From: Bugula neritina
Taxonomy: Eukaryota; Animalia; Bryozoa
NCBI GenBank assembly: GCA_964035545.1
Contig: OZ037772.1
Span: 1,922,001 to 1,986,000 of the forward strand
Length of the DNA stretch: 64,000 nt
Direction: 5' to 3'
Positions within the stretch are counted from its first letter, which is position 1; every line of letters begins with the position of its first letter. A model generated the notes under the pieces. That model ran no database searches. It was given only the letters and a program-made list of their open reading frames with translations, and had not been told where the DNA came from. A program made the position numbers and the translations under genes. Shown here piece by piece: positions 28,611 through 36,906 of the stretch.

Positions 28611-29798
28611 AAATATATCTTTACGAGCTAGCAATTTGATTATAAATAGGTATACGAGAAACATTGTTATTTATTACTTTATTAGGTAAAGTAGTTACAC
28701 TGATATTTCGGGTACCACTGTACCCATCTTCAGAGTAGCAATGAATGAAATTCAAAAATTATTATGTTACGTTAGACGTTATGCATGACACAAAGAATAG
28801 AGAGTGGCAGTTATTGTAAATTATTGAAACTTAGGAAGATAATCTTATTTTATATATTACGCAGGTCAAAAATTATACTGATTTTTTTGCATAAAAAATA
28901 AATTAGAGTTGACAAAAAAATAGACATCCAAATAAGAATAAGAAAGATTACATCAATAAATGTTTAGAAATACTAAATACACCAAAATTTTCAACATGTT
29001 CCACAGATCCAACAAAAACTATTGAAAATCGAATACAATTAGAATTACGTAGTATCAAAAAACATTTTTCGGACACTGACTACAAAAGGATATATCCAAC
29101 AGGTTCAGCACCTGGGAAATTTTACGGGATGGCCAAATTACACAAACTCAAACAAGGAGATGGTATGGAGAAGCTACAAATGCGATTAATAATTTCTAAC
29201 ATAGGTACTGCATCATACCAACTTGCGAAATACCTGGCCAAAATGCTAAAACCACTTAGTGAATCTGAAAGTAATATTGAATCAACCGATAGTTTTCTTA
29301 CATATGTACGGCAACTTCATATTCCAGCAAACCATCAACTGATATCATTTGATGTTGTTTCCCTCTTTACTTCTGTACCACTTGACTACACAATTTCAGC
29401 AATCATAAATGATATTTATGAGAAACAACGAATCCAAACAACTATACCAAAGAAGAAAATGATAAACCTACTCAACCTTTGTACAAAACAAGTTCACTTT
29501 ACTTTCAACGGCATCATTTATACACAGACGGATGGTGTTGCTATGGGATCTCCTCTAGGACCAATAATTGCGAATATATTCATGACAAAACTAGAACAGA
29601 AAGTAATACCAAAATTGAATTCAATGTCACCTTGGGTGAGATACATAGATGACACATTTGCAACCATAGACCCTGATTATATTAACACAACACTCAACAC
29701 ACTTAATAATTTTCATCCTAACATAAAATTTACTCACGAACTAGAAACCAATAAATTACTTTCTTTTCTGGATGTTACAGTTTTGCGACACAATAGCT
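28611..29798. mobile_element. Truncated, internally inverted Penelope copy: 3' pLTR/tail on - (28611-28934) plus RT fragment on + (28935-29798)
   Basis: 28611-28934 nearly identical to 29910-30234; + fragment encodes SFDVVSLFTSVP, GVAMGSPLGP, RYIDDTF. Confidence 0.92.
28694..28742 (-). ncRNA. Minimal type I hammerhead ribozyme (copy 1)
   Basis: Minus strand: attgctact-CTGAAGA-t-gggtac-agtg-gtaccc-GAAA-TATC-agtgtaac. Confidence 0.85.
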
Positions 29799-29804
29799 AT
29801 AATA

Positions 29805-29905
29805 AATATATACATGTATGTATATATATATATATGTATATATATATATATATATATGTATATATATATATATATATATATATATATATATATATATATA
29901 TATAT
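29805..29905. repeat. Interrupted (TA)n microsatellite between Penelope copies
   Basis: Read directly. Confidence 0.95.
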
Positions 29906-29992
29906 ATTTAAATATATCTTTACGAGCTAGTAATTTGATTATAAATAGGTATACGAGAAACATTGTTATTTATTACTTTATTAGGTAAAGTA

Positions 29993-30041
29993 ATTACACT
30001 GATATTTCGGGTACCACTGTACCCATCTTCAGAGTAGCAAT
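29993..30041 (-). ncRNA. Minimal type I hammerhead ribozyme (copy 2)
   Basis: CTGAAGA ... 6-bp stem II gggtac/gtaccc ... GAAATATC on the minus strand. Confidence 0.85.
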
Positions 30042-32793: not shown

Positions 32794-34035
32794 GAATGAA
32801 ATTCAAAAATTATTATGTTACGTTAGACGTTATGCATGACACAAAGAATAGAGAGTGACAGTTATTGTAAATTATTGAAACTTAAAGGAGATAATCTTAT
32901 TTTATATATTACGCAGGTCAAAAATTATACTGATTTTTTTGCATAAAAAATAAATTAGAGTTGACAAAAAAAATAGATATCCAAATATAAAAACAGCAAG
33001 AATTAGTGAAACTATGTGAGAGTTGAGTAGTGTGGAGCTATTGATATAGTTTTAGTGGTATGGAGTAATTTTGTTTATTGAGTTGCGGTTTTATTTGTTT
33101 AATGTAGAGAGCTTCGGCTACTTTTCGATGGTGGATTCCTTTAAATGAATGATTTAAAACTGTTACATTGTCTATTGATATGTTTCCATGATTAGTGGTA
33201 GAGATGTGTTGATAAATTTTGGAATTGATGTAATTGCAGTGTTCATGTATCCTGTGTGATAGGCGACGTCCGGTTTCGCCTACATATGTTTGTTGACAGG
33301 TAGCTTCAGGGCAGGTTATTTTGTAGACTAGGTTGTGAATGTGTTCTTTATTGGTTTTATCTTTGAGATTAAAATGTGAACTTAAGACCCAAGAACTAAA
33401 CTATATTCGAAATGTTTTTGAACATAAAAATGGTTACCCTAAATATGTAATAGAGAAAACTATTAACAACATTGGTGACGGACTACTCAGTGAAAAAGAC
33501 AACAGGAAACACATTTTACTTCAGCTGCCTTATAAAGGAGTAACAGGAGAAAAACTAATTCGCTCCCTCAATAAATTAATTACAGACTCTTTTTCAAATG
33601 AACTCAATGCCCGTATTTTATTTAAAGGAACCCCCTTAAGTTCACATTTTAATCTCAAAGATAAAACCAATAAAGAACACATTCACAACCTAGTCTACAA
33701 AATAACCTGCCCTGAAGCTACCTGTCAACAAACATATGTAGGCGAAACCGGACGTCGCCTATCACACAGGATACATGAACACTGCAATGACATCAATTCC
33801 AAAATTTATCAACACATCTCTACCACTAATCATGGAAACATATCAATAGACAATGTAACAGTTTTAAATCATTCATTTTAAGGAATCCACCATCGAAAAG
33901 TAGCCGAAGCTCTCTACATTAAACAAATAAAACCGCAACTCAATAAACAAAATTACTCCATACCACTAAAACTATATCAGTAGCTCCACACTACTCAACT
34001 CTCACATAGTTTCACTAATTCTTGCTGTTTTTATA

Positions 34036-36604
34036 CACAGTTGGTTTAAGGTCATACTTTTCATTTTCTGGCTCTTTGCCAGGTGCTTTATGTTCTATAT
34101 GAACAATGTTCCACTGATAGCTCGAACAGGTTGAATGTCACAGGAACAAAAAAAATATGAAAAGATAAAGAAATTTATGTTCTCCAATATACTTTTTTAT
34201 TTTTTTCAAAAGCCAATTCATGTTTAAGTTATAGCTTGTTGAAAAACATAGTCCCCCTTCCACATTCTTTTCAATTTATACGCTCCTGACTTGTTATTGT
34301 GTCTCAATATGCCTTGTATTTGAGTGCTTGTTAGTCTCGCTTCACTAACTTTGCCTATACTTCACAAGTGCCAGTGCTGCTGGCTCAAAAGCTAAATGTT
34401 ATAAACTGTCAGCTAAAACCCAATCTTGTATTCCTAGGTTGGTTGGCCTAAATAAAACAATAGTCAAATCATGATTTCATGTTTTAAAAATTTACTCTAT
34501 TCTAACCTGCTGCCTAGCTAGTTCTATTTTTGATGTATAATTACAAAATTTGTGATACATTTTTTTGGCAACCATGTGATTTATAAAATGCAGTAATGGT
34601 ACTTATAATATTATATTATTATCATTATAATATATTATATAGTACTATGTGTGTTTTTATTATACTGCATAATATCTATTTTATTATTGTTGTTGTGCAA
34701 ACAAGTGCAATTAACCTAGTTTTCAAAATGTACCTCTAAATTATCAGAATATCAGTTTAGATATTTTCATGCTTTGTAAGGTAAACCTAAAAAAAGAGGC
34801 TGTATTCCCAAAGTAAAGGGTGTTGAACTATGAACTATATTAGATTAGCCACTCTGCTACCAAGTGCGTCAGTATAATATTATATGAAAAGCTCTGATGC
34901 TTTGTCTCCGGTGGCTGGCTGCGATATGATAACTTGGCCAACTTCCAAGAGTTTAAAATTGGCGCAATTATTCAAGAGGTTACATACTGCACAGAGCTAG
35001 CAGTGATAGTAACCTTGCTATTGGCAGTACTTATTACAACTGCCAGCATATAAGCTGCATTGTAGAATGCCGTTGGGGTAGGCTATTAAAACCAAATTCT
35101 GCTCTCTAATATACCTAAGACACAATGCAGCAACATAATTGTTCATTTCATTTCATTTTACATTGCCACCCTTACATGAGCTGTGGGCTTCATAAAGATT
35201 CATATGATTAGAGATTTATGCTATAGGCTAGCTATGATGAAAATAACACACCATTGTCAAAGTTAACTTCAAGTATGTTGTTTTCCAGAAACTCAGTAAT
35301 GTCCATTTATCTCTCGCATACAAATACTTATGTAATAGCATACAGTTTAAGTTTTATTTTAGAGCACATCTGCAAACTCTACAATAAGAGCTTGCTTTAC
35401 CAGTCTATTTCAGACCTGTTTTTGTAGCTAGTAATACGCAAGCTACTTATTTTTAAACTTTTGGGTTATTTGTTCAAAACCATTAGCTTTGCTAGTAACC
35501 CGAGACTATTGCAACAGTTGACTGCTATCAACATGAATTGACAGCCTAATAATTATAACCCGTTTGCGCGCGAAATATTTATGTAATGATAGTGACTCAT
35601 ATAGTGCGCGTTTCATTTACGATGACTGCGTGGTCCAGAGGTTAGAGGCGTCAACGACGAGTTGGTTGATCATGGTTCAACCCTGTTTTGTTGCAATTTT
35701 TTTTGTCAATTTATGCAAATCCTACGCATGTATAATAAATATGGCTATAAGTGTAAAGTTTTTTTTTTAACTTTTGTTCAACAGTAAGACAACATACATG
35801 CATAATAATTAGATACTGAACGCTGGACTAAACCTTAAATTGATCTTATAGAATACAATGTACTTAAAATAATCATATGTGAATTAGAGAAACTGAAAGT
35901 ACACCTGCTGTGCTATAGACAGACCTTTACTGACAAGACTGCAAAGTGAAGTGATTTAGCTGAAATTAACTCTGCCAAACAAACAAAGAATTATGTTGTG
36001 CTAAGGCATTTTCAATATATTATTGTAACATAGTGAGATGATTCAGCTAAGTGCTAATGTAAAACAGGGAACATTATCTTGGCAGAAATCCAATAGATTG
36101 CCAATTTGTGCGAGAGGGTACTATATGTTATTGTGATAGCGCAGAGCGGCAAACGTACTAGGAATTTTATAATTAGTCACAGGAGCGTAGCTAGAACCAC
36201 CATATGAAGAATTTAGAAAATTGCAGTGAAACTTGCAAAATGGTGTATGTTTTTACCAAATTGTGAAGAGCATAAACAGAATTTCAAAAAACAAAGAAAG
36301 TATATTAGAGAAAACATATCAAGGAATGTCAAGTTTAACTTTTAGACTTGATAAAATGAATCCCCTGTGCTACAGCAGTGGAACATGGAGGGTATAAAAT
36401 TTTACTTATTATGCAACAACTTTCTCAGAAAATTTTTTATTGAAAAATTAAAAAAGTATATGAAAGAGGAATGCAAGAGCTATCTTTTCATGTAAAATTT
36501 GTTAATGTGAGACAAAAACTGTTCGAGCTATCCCCTGGAAACCGTTTATATATAACATAAAGCAGTGCTTGAATCTGGAAAGTAATGACCTTAAACTAAC
36601 TGTG
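34036..36604. mobile_element. Non-autonomous TIR DNA transposon (2569 bp) with TA target-site duplication (Tc1/mariner-like)
   Basis: About 100-bp imperfect TIRs beginning cacagtt(g/a)gtttaaggtcat; TA at 34034-34035 and 36605-36606; the empty site is visible in the other pLTR copies; no transposase ORF. Confidence 0.9.
35624..35700 (+). mobile_element. tRNA-derived SINE-like head (second copy about 48477-48555)
   Basis: A-box-like TGGTCCAGAGG, B-box-like GGTTCAACCC, then a T-run. Confidence 0.45.
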
Positions 36605-36802
36605 TATTTGGATATCTATTTTTTTTTTGTCAACTCTAATTTATTTTTTATGCAAAAAAAAATCAGTATAATTTTTGACCTGCGTAATATATAAAATAAG
36701 ATTATCTCCTTTAAGTTTCAATAATTTACAATAACTGTCACTCTCTATTCTTTGTGTCATGCATAACGTCTAACGTAACATAATAATTTTTGAATTTCAT
36801 TC

Positions 36803-36851
36803 ATTGCTACTCTGAAGATGGGTACAGTGGTACCCGAAATATCAGTGTAAT
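36803..36851 (+). ncRNA. Minimal type I hammerhead ribozyme (copy 4)
   Basis: attgctact (36803-36811), CTGAAGA (36812-36818), gggtac-agtg-gtaccc, GAAA (36836-36839), TATC, agtgtaat; predicted cleavage after C36843. Confidence 0.85.
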
Positions 36852-36906
36852 TACTTTACCTAATAAAGTAATAAATAACAATGTTTCTCGTATACCTATT
36901 TATAAT

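Follow-up and report, generated by a model that had tools for sequence, protein, structure and literature searches.

The analyzed window, a 64,000-nt stretch of Bugula DNA, contains two insertion units of a Penelope-like element (PLE). On the left, a (TA)n tract (28422 to 28610 by direct reading; TRF 28422-28618, period 2, 98.5 copies) borders a 5'-truncated minus-strand arm at 28611-28945, in which a long tail (ATG at 28664, junction at +55) is joined to the pseudo-LTR (pLTR) and 3' untranslated region (UTR; unit 2481-2810), as seen from direct reading, repeat comparison, and the L004 HSP 202-529. Next to it, an inverted plus-strand fragment of the reverse transcriptase (RT)-coding region (28936-29798, unit 825-1687; inverted repeat I1, 97% identical to 31029-31891) lacks its own 3' part and has an internal end against TA-rich DNA. 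This unit is separated from the second one by an imperfect (TA)n run at 29798-29905 (TRF 29798-29917).

The second unit includes a full-length minus-strand copy, whose 3' end is a 58-nt long tail (29906-29963; direct reading and junction census) that repeats the first 19 codons of the open reading frame (ORF) after the downstream pLTR. That pLTR, read directly and from repeats, occupies 29964-30387 together with the 3' UTR, a hammerhead core, and the last 34 ORF codons beyond an in-frame stop. The ORF itself (30388-32715, minus strand) encodes 775 amino acids, with the RT followed by a GIY-YIG endonuclease (EN) that is cut by the in-frame stop at 30388-30390, within the GIY-YIG domain; this assignment relies on the Pfam RVT_1 match, the homologues, and the EN motifs. 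Upstream of the ORF is the pLTR of a 5'-truncated tandem copy (32716-33386, minus strand; direct and inverted repeats D2 and I3), in which the EN C terminus reads through at the place of the stop in the main copy. A head-to-head inverted, 5'-truncated arm follows on the plus strand. Its first part (33380-34035) is 100% complementary to 30234-30889 (I2), and the remaining part (36606-36906; direct reading and inverted repeat I4) consists of a pLTR with the hammerhead core and a 26-nt short tail (ATG at 36881). The two parts are separated by the insertion of an unrelated, non-PLE element with terminal inverted repeats and a duplicated TA, both read directly (34036-36605). The right-most tail is flanked by a (TA)n tract at 36907-37073 (TRF 36897-37073, period 2, 89 copies).

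The three tail junctions are thus ..GATATATTTA|TATA at 28610/28611 (minus strand, ATG 28664, apparent +55), ..TTTAAAT|ATAT at 29906 (minus strand, ATG 29963, +58), and ..TTTATAAT|ATAT at 36906 (plus strand, ATG 36881, +26). Direct reading and TRF confirmed that all three end in (TA)n, as stated in the original prediction, and the sense words it gave for these junctions are correct within the 1- to 2-nt ambiguity that a TA flank imposes. The tails do not represent three separate events, since a single inverted, double-ended insertion has its outer ends at 29906 and 36906. This anatomy, with pseudo-LTRs that come from partial tandems and with an adjacent inverted 5'-truncated copy, can be compared with the genome-wide set of arms, in which 87 of 120 have an inverted partner and 7 of 120 have a tandem one.

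The window ORF is a single ORF with a PLE-type RT (RVT_1, E = 1.7e-10, residues 356 to 522 in Pfam). The nearest Atlas clusters of its product bear the HTH_animal, DUF8422, RVT_1, and GIY-YIG domains, the same Pfam set that is found in 363 homologues. The C-terminal position of the GIY-YIG endonuclease in this family follows from the positions of the EN motifs and the alignment of homologues (A1), which shows the pattern GIY..YVGET..R..R..H..E..N with a C-x4-C motif and the invariant columns Y..YxGET..R..R..H and RK..E..N. PF01541 is present in the homologue P0053; Pfam did not score GIY-YIG in the uninterrupted 115-aa C terminus from the window, and a PDB sequence search returned no match. 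Among relatives in other organisms, L101 (47% identity) is a low-coverage contig of 3.6 kb that forms a perfect palindrome, has no TA repeat where the element stops, and lacks a definable end. A contig with a 2.5-kb ORF is present in a sequencing run that was guessed to be RNA.

Judging by its motifs, the family likely has a Penelope/Poseidon-type architecture. The CCHH motif is present within the GIY-YIG core, with C-x4-C between the GIY and YVG motifs and H..H downstream, and the CX2-5CxxC linker between RT and EN is absent: no Cys pair was seen in the 90 residues upstream of EN in the window protein, nor was the linker found in the alignment of the ten closest full-length relatives. The absence of this zinc-finger-like linker upstream of GIY-YIG speaks against membership in Neptune or Nematis. 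Members of the Naiad clade have an N-terminal GIY-YIG endonuclease with a CxC domain and no canonical hammerhead (Craig et al. 2021, PMC8557442); the C-terminal EN motifs and the hammerhead core read in the pLTR speak against that assignment, too.

The putative minimal hammerhead core, CUGAAGA followed by a 7-bp stem II, GAAA, and UAUC, was read at 36812-36843 in the plus-arm pLTR (CTGAAGA at 36812-36818, GAAA at 36836-36839) and in every other pLTR copy. As searches against the Rfam hammerhead families gave no match at E <= 1 in the element region and none at E <= 0.01 at four loci, this assignment is by motif reading. The only Rfam hits were subthreshold miRNA-like matches from TA hairpins and inverted arms. 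For genome annotation, the many hammerhead-bearing stubs beside TA repeats can be regarded as truncated copies of ordinary PLEs.

(TA)n microsatellites are almost the only targets of the family, and a typical insertion is an inverted copy with two ends, where one 3' tail is long and the other short. Of the approximately 300 3' ends in the 216-Mb genome, the census covered a sample of 116 distinct ones, and in 102 of these the junction is followed immediately by pure (TA)n of 10 nt or more. The remaining ends mostly adjoin TA tracts that are shorter or imperfect, or they represent indel miscalls; the sole insertion clearly outside a microsatellite is the two-ended one at locus L003. Across the entire genome (forward strand), (AT)6 occurs within 6 to 8 nt at 53 short ends and at 73 of the 90 long-anchor sites. 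Pure (TA)n runs of at least 10 nt make up 624 of the 64,000 nt of the window (no more than 1%), the single 64-kb stretch from which background TA density was taken, and 429 of these 624 nt adjoin this element; given such coverage, the occurrence of all three window ends in (TA)n is far beyond chance. The proposal of a Penelope-like, microsatellite-targeting retroelement with tails that extend into the first codons of the ORF is supported: flanks genome-wide are TA, and the junctions are distributed nonrandomly with respect to TA words of the element.

At least 16 of the 26 solo arms have (TA)n at their 5' junctions as well, so the repeat appears to pre-exist the insertion; since neither an empty site nor a polymorphic allele was seen, this conclusion draws on the solo copies that are TA-flanked on both sides. 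It is improbable that the association is merely passive, with insertion into any AT-rich DNA and (TA)n that either grew from the element's own tail ends or reflects selective survival in microsatellites. TA-rich words at the tail ends could seed slippage, and PLE endonucleases generally prefer AT-rich DNA (PMC11167929, PMC3846280). However, the copies are young (mostly 97 to 100% identical, with the arms of a pair differing by 0.76% versus 1.70% between loci), yet their flanking tracts are 100 to 190 nt long; the solo copies with (TA)n at the 5' junction are randomly truncated, and the window holds a long (TA)n tract without this element (42615-42721). The birth of microsatellites from the tails was rejected on the basis of copy youth, the 5'-junction (TA)n, and the element-free tract.

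The 5' junctions of solo copies also argue against a telomerase-like process, in which the RT, a relative of TERT, would make the TA repeat by reiterative copying of AUAUAU as it begins to reverse transcribe. PLE RTs and telomerase RTs form sister groups (PMC8557442), and an ATATAT word is present in the long-tail zone, but junctions are continuous with it in only 8 of 116 cases, most junctions (+24, +55, or +58) are out of register with it, and the short-tail ends lack it altogether. This very improbable scheme was rejected because ATATAT is rarely at the junction and (TA)n flanks the 5' junctions.

The junctions fall into two zones only, at +24/26/28 and +52/55/57/58 from the ATG, with none of 116 at +29 to +46, none at the 4-nt TATA word (+11 to +14), and none in the TA-rich pLTR. 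Word counts were 329 for the pLTR, 302 for the ATG, 223 for the tail, and 7 for the ORF continuation. The zones (+24/26 and +52/55/58) are spaced by ∼30 to 34 nt, and 31 to 32 of the 35 inverted pairs combine a long end with a short one, the extension being present at one end only. This rule is structural and does not stem from homology. The long-tailed arm does not reach further 5' than the short-tailed one (9 versus 12, with 12 symmetric). The variable tail length represents the published optional 30- to 40-bp PLE tail at one end (PMC8557442, PMC3846280), and the two ends of the tail correspond to the pair of internal start sites demonstrated for the RT in vitro (PMC11167929).

Microhomology between the nicked repeat and the RNA, originally proposed as the priming principle, turned out to be real but minor. 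In-phase homology of at least 2 nt with the repeat was found at 94 of 103 junctions (91%), whereas starts blind to homology within the same zones would give 45 to 57%; this excess means that RNA-DNA pairing contributes. Every used site ends in TA or AT, as would be expected if pairing of nicked (TA)n with TA words of the RNA selected both the target and the start, the endonuclease having no repeat preference. However, that scheme is unlikely. Although no TA word is longer than the 6-nt ATATAT at +47 to +52, it ranks last among the three main long-zone sites, with 8 junctions as opposed to 19 at +55 and 21 at +58, both of which are 2-nt sites; the TATA word and the pLTR are not used at all. Two nucleotides are too few to account for a target specificity of about 90 to 98%, the long/short rule is left unexplained, and other hammerhead-bearing families with different tails land in the same tracts. 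At L003, the non-TA insertion, the long-tail junction (+57) has no homology to the primer. The other junction, with the short tail, has up to 5 nt (ATAAT) in common with the target, and homology could thus play a greater part at the short site. Because of the two narrow zones, the unused TA words, the underuse of ATATAT, the pairing rule, and the homology-free L003 junction, microhomology does not seem to be the primary cause of the choice of target or start site. Short primer-template pairing can be said to tune the start of reverse transcription and not to define it.

The pattern is probably best explained by a mechanism in which (TA)n is selected by the EN or the ribonucleoprotein (RNP), the protein defines two internal sites for the start of reverse transcription, and pairing of 2 to 6 nt sets the exact register. 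The RT-EN RNP would recognize the repeat and nick both strands, and each exposed 3'-OH would prime internally on the element RNA in one of two zones inside the ORF (about +21 to +28 and +52 to +58). The exact first copied base could be set by pairing of the TA-ending primer with A/U dinucleotides in the RNA. Two cDNAs, usually 5' truncated, would then be joined head to head, giving inverted double-ended insertions with one long and one short outer tail. The data directly establish the family assignment, the (TA)n on both flanks, the two zones of junctions, the long/short rule, and the surplus of in-phase junctions; the choice of target by EN/RNP rather than by RNA-DNA homology and the order of events are inferred. 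Against it, no strand difference in start-site use was seen in vitro by Frangieh et al., and the pairs in this family are heterotypic. A stricter version, put forward tentatively, is that each integration is obligately asymmetric, with one strand priming at +24/26 and the other at +52 to +58, both phase-locked by 2 to 6 nt, through a linker-less Penelope/Poseidon-type protein.

This young family is a clear case of behavior known for PLEs and not a new kind of element; the (TA)n bias, the tails, and the two start sites are all in the published literature. In PAc, a Poseidon element from Anolis carolinensis, both target strands are cleaved and extended, with AT-rich cleavage, and reverse transcription has two internal start sites, which are located shortly after the beginning of the ORF and delimit the genomic tail (Frangieh et al. 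2024, PMC11167929). PAc has the same ORF layout, with RT and C-terminal GIY-YIG, and a pLTR with a hammerhead, represented here by the core motif (PMC11167929). However, the PAc tail is at about +111 to +118, as opposed to +25 to +58, and its starts were reported to be non-homologous, unlike the junctions with 2- to 6-nt in-phase homology described above. In the Bugula family, furthermore, the entire hammerhead core precedes the ATG, insertion is almost restricted to (TA)n, and it is rare for both ends of an insertion to share a start zone.

In Pen2a_Av and related Penelope families from Adineta vaga, one inverted pLTR bears a tail (Arkhipova et al. 2013, PMC3846280); the authors also refer to a report that simple AT-rich targets are preferred. 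As in Bugula, the pLTR includes the first ORF codons, and the inverted arms are 5' truncated, with short overlaps at the inner junction (PMC3846280). The Bugula family has roughly 300 ends, almost all of which are within (TA)n, whereas the rotifer families are present in one or a few copies and have 8- to 10-bp target duplications in ordinary DNA. Naiad and Neptune share with the Bugula family a strong (TA)n microsatellite bias, pLTRs, tandem and inverted insertions, and tails; both carry the CX2-5CxxC linker, which was proposed to mediate this bias (Craig et al. 2021, PMC8557442). Naiad differs in its N-terminal EN and the lack of a canonical hammerhead, whereas the Bugula family combines a C-terminal EN and a hammerhead core with the absence of the linker.

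Microsatellite-specific insertion is also found in non-LTR retrotransposons, such as Dong of the R4 clade at (TAA)n and Waldo, Mino, Kibi, and Koshi of the CR1 group. Similarly to the Bugula family, they use target-primed reverse transcription at simple repeats and have an element 3' end that matches the repeat unit. However, they belong to another RT lineage, encode a restriction-like or APE endonuclease, and insert with one end only, and they lack pLTRs, inverted arms, and tails derived from the ORF.

With about 300 young ends of one family, the Bugula genome provides a clean natural data set that puts numbers on three PLE traits usually described qualitatively: (TA)n targeting, the two initiation zones, and the long-plus-short rule. 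Near-absolute (TA)n targeting by a protein that has no CX2-5CxxC linker indicates that the linker is not needed for targeting. If the asymmetric reading is true, PLE integration would be constrained in vivo in a way that was not seen in the in vitro system, and the determinant of repeat recognition would sit elsewhere in the protein or the RNA than in that linker.

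Direct reading of positions 28000-37500, combined with TRF, the ORF list and the repeat finder, indicates that the Penelope-like element (PLE) sequences in the window form two insertion units and not three, since a single inverted insertion is bounded by the 3' ends at 29906 and 36906. The left unit adjoins a (TA)n tract at 28422-28610 (direct reading and TRF) and consists of a minus-strand fragment containing a tail, i.e., a 3' extension past the pseudo-LTR (pLTR) into the first ORF codons, with its pLTR (28611-28945), and a plus-strand RT fragment (28936-29798) that is inverted with respect to 31029-31891 (97% identity). 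After an imperfect TA tract (29798-29905) comes the full-length minus-strand copy, which comprises a 58-nt tail (29906-29963), the downstream pLTR between this tail and the ORF, a 775-aa ORF (30388-32715), and an upstream pLTR that results from a partial tandem copy and reaches 33386. Its head-to-head inverted arm lies on the plus strand in two pieces, 33380-34035 and 36606-36906, interrupted by an unrelated element of 2.6 kb (34036-36605) that has terminal inverted repeats (TIRs) and a TA duplication. The arm is followed by another (TA)n tract (36907-37073). The three 3' ends originally noted in this region were confirmed, save for an ambiguity of 1-2 nt caused by the TA flank; they read ..TTTA/TATA, ..AAAT/ATAT, and ..ATAAT/ATAT and correspond to positions +55, +58, and +26 from the ORF ATG.

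In the left unit, the entire 3' part of the RT fragment is missing, and the fragment breaks off within RT-coding sequence (..CACAATAGCT), where it adjoins TA-rich DNA; at the inner junction, unit position 825 of this fragment (counted along the element) is joined to unit position 2481 of the opposed arm. This structure is unusual within the family and might most simply be explained by a later deletion. The TIRs of the 2.6-kb element begin with CACAGTTGG. A 96%-identical copy of it (L011:1-1501; C1, ∼2.98 Mb) abuts the same PLE region with the same end, at a junction that is 9-12 nt further upstream than in the window and has no TA. This repeated contact may reflect a hot spot, a co-mobilized composite, or coincidence. 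Another type of element associated with TA repeats, in the region 42615-42980, is a foldback or MITE-like inverted repeat (∼95 nt per arm) that encloses (TA)n at 42817-42874 and is bordered on its left side by a 107-nt (TA)n.

In the 216-Mb assembly, with up to 2 mismatches allowed, the pLTR word was found at 329 sites, the ATG word (-9 to +21) at 302, the tail word (+25 to +52) at 223, and the ORF continuation word (+53 to +82) at only 7. These counts imply ∼300 or more 3' ends, with the ORF start kept in very few copies. Overall, most copies are 97-100% identical to the window copy. Among 116 distinct 3' ends sampled from 100 loci, 102 directly adjoin a pure (TA)n run of 10 nt or more, and most of the others have shorter or imperfect TA runs or are indel miscalls. 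Across the genome, on its forward strand, (AT)6 lies within 6-8 nt of 53 short ends and of 73 of the 90 long-anchor sites. In the single 64-kb window used as background, pure (TA)n runs that reach 10 nt make up no more than 1% of the sequence, two thirds of them next to the PLE. The association of the tails with (TA)n, proposed from three junctions, holds genome-wide, non-TA flanks are not the majority, and the junctions are not random relative to the TA words of the element.

These junctions fall into two zones. The short-tail zone includes +24 (37 of the 116 ends), +26 (13), and +28 (5), and the long-tail zone includes +52 (8), +55 (19), +57 (5), and +58 (21), in addition to a few singletons elsewhere. 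None of the 116 ends maps to +29 to +46 or to the TATA word at +11 to +14, and the word counts (329 versus 302) allow at most ∼27 ends upstream of +21. The spacing of the zones, ∼30-34 nt, equals the published optional PLE tail of 30-40 bp (PMC8557442), exemplified by a 31-bp tail (PMC3846280). The two zones also match the behavior of a Poseidon element in vitro, where reverse transcription starts from two internal RNA positions that lie on either side of the tail (PMC11167929).

The (TA)n could have been synthesized by the RT or expanded from the tails. Both options are countered by the 5' ends, which were readable in 120 arms. An inverted arm adjoins 87 of these and a tandem copy adjoins 7; in at least 16 of the remaining 26, (TA)n lies directly at the 5' junction, with arbitrary truncation points, so solo copies are embedded in TA repeats on both sides. 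Together with a long PLE-free (TA)n at 42615-42721, this argues for a microsatellite that predates the insertion and serves as its target.

Short and long tails are combined in 31 of the 35 head-to-head pairs, and one further pair, called short/short owing to an indel artifact, is truly short/long. The resulting 32 of 35 has a probability of ∼2e-7 if the ends are independent at ∼50% each; these counts quantify the literature observation that PLE insertions often have a tail at just one of their ends. Divergence between the arms of a pair is 0.76% of compared positions, versus 1.70% between arms from different loci, which fits the origin of both arms in one concerted event. No greater 5' reach of the long-tailed arm than of the short-tailed arm was found.

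Microhomology between nicked (TA)n and TA-rich RNA words had been proposed to prime reverse transcription. When element bases that prolong the TA alternation of the flank are counted, in-phase homology of at least 2 nt is seen at 94 of 103 junctions (2 nt in 52, 4 nt in 35, and 6 nt in 7). If all possible starts in the two zones are enumerated, for one or both phases of the repeat, the homology-blind expectation is 40-60% (binomial P of ∼1e-7 in the short-tail zone and ∼1e-11 in the long-tail zone). This excess indicates that pairing of a TA-ending primer with A/U dinucleotides does bias the exact register. However, site use does not scale with homology length: among the three main sites of the long-tail zone, the 6-nt ATATAT is used least, and the 4-nt TATA word outside the zones is unused. 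Two nucleotides cannot explain a target specificity of ∼90-98%. The microhomology proposal is thus partly correct, as an effect that fine-tunes the register. The one clear non-microsatellite insertion (L003), with a 6-bp duplication GTACAC, has zero homology to the primer at its long-tail junction (+57) and shares at most 5 nt (ATAAT) with the target at its short-tail junction.

The same TA tracts are met head-on by at least three further families that have hammerheads but other 3' ends: family X (L017, L020, and L088), family Y (L019, L025, L026, and L035), and family Z (L022 and L083). Several PLE or retrozyme-like families thus have the (TA)n target in common in this genome. Their differing 3' ends point away from the particular words of the PLE and to a property common to the proteins, or to how the repeat is structured at the chromatin or DNA level. 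These families adjoin the tracts in the opposite orientation to the PLE. At a distance of 70-170 nt from the end, they contain a canonical hammerhead core, of the form CTGACGAG..CGAAAC or CTGATGA..GTGAAAC, that Rfam did not detect. For a 47%-identical relative (L101), the ENA contig is a perfect 3.6-kb palindrome that continues past the PLE into the flanks, with 2.8x coverage; it appears to be a fold-back artifact of the assembly and not a natural inverted insertion.

Every pLTR of the PLE contains, ∼70 nt upstream of the ATG, a hammerhead-like core recognized by motif reading (CUGAAGA, a 7-bp stem II, GAAA, and UAUC) and undetected by Rfam. About a third of the arms (37 of 120) start inside a 20-nt window just 5' of this core (unit positions 2671-2688, ∼65-82 nt upstream of the ATG, e.g., 36799-36816), which accounts for the frequent minimal inverted dimers of 82-160 nt from ATG to ATG (loci such as L040, L063, L097, and L098). 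This window might correspond to the 5' end of the RNA, to a site of strong RT stopping, or to a hot spot for template switching.

The ORF contains RVT_1 (Pfam), and its closest Atlas clusters include HTH_animal, DUF8422, RVT_1, and, partly, GIY-YIG. A database search returned 363 homologues with the same Pfam set, the best being an 809-aa protein with 97% identity and all others having at most 49%. Pfam gives the endonuclease (EN) domain itself no score; alignment with nine relatives reveals the GIY-YIG pattern in the C-terminal 210 residues (VY..C-x4-C..YVGET..R..R..H, then RK..E..N) and, in the linker upstream, no cysteine pair. For Craig et al. 2021 (PMC8557442), a CCHH motif without the CX2-5CxxC linker is the Penelope/Poseidon architecture; on these motif criteria, the element is assigned to it and not to Neptune, Nematis, Hydra, or Naiad. 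An in-frame stop interrupts the EN domain in both the main copy (30388-30390) and the plus arm (33879-33881), which are 100% identical over 656 nt. The tandem copy, 99% identical with few differences, has a sense codon at this position (33140-33142), so the templates of the tandem part and the main body may have differed. A sense codon is also found in one contig from a run guessed to be RNA.

The best-supported reading is that the RNP would select (TA)n, both nicked strands would prime reverse transcription at two protein-defined internal zones, and the register would be fixed through short pairing. The literature on PLEs already describes all the essentials: a bias toward (TA)n, a tail, double-ended insertions with inverted arms, and reverse transcription from two internal sites. 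Particular to the present family are a Penelope/Poseidon-type architecture lacking the zinc finger in the linker, a quantified rule that pairs a long with a short tail, and junctions in phase with the repeat.
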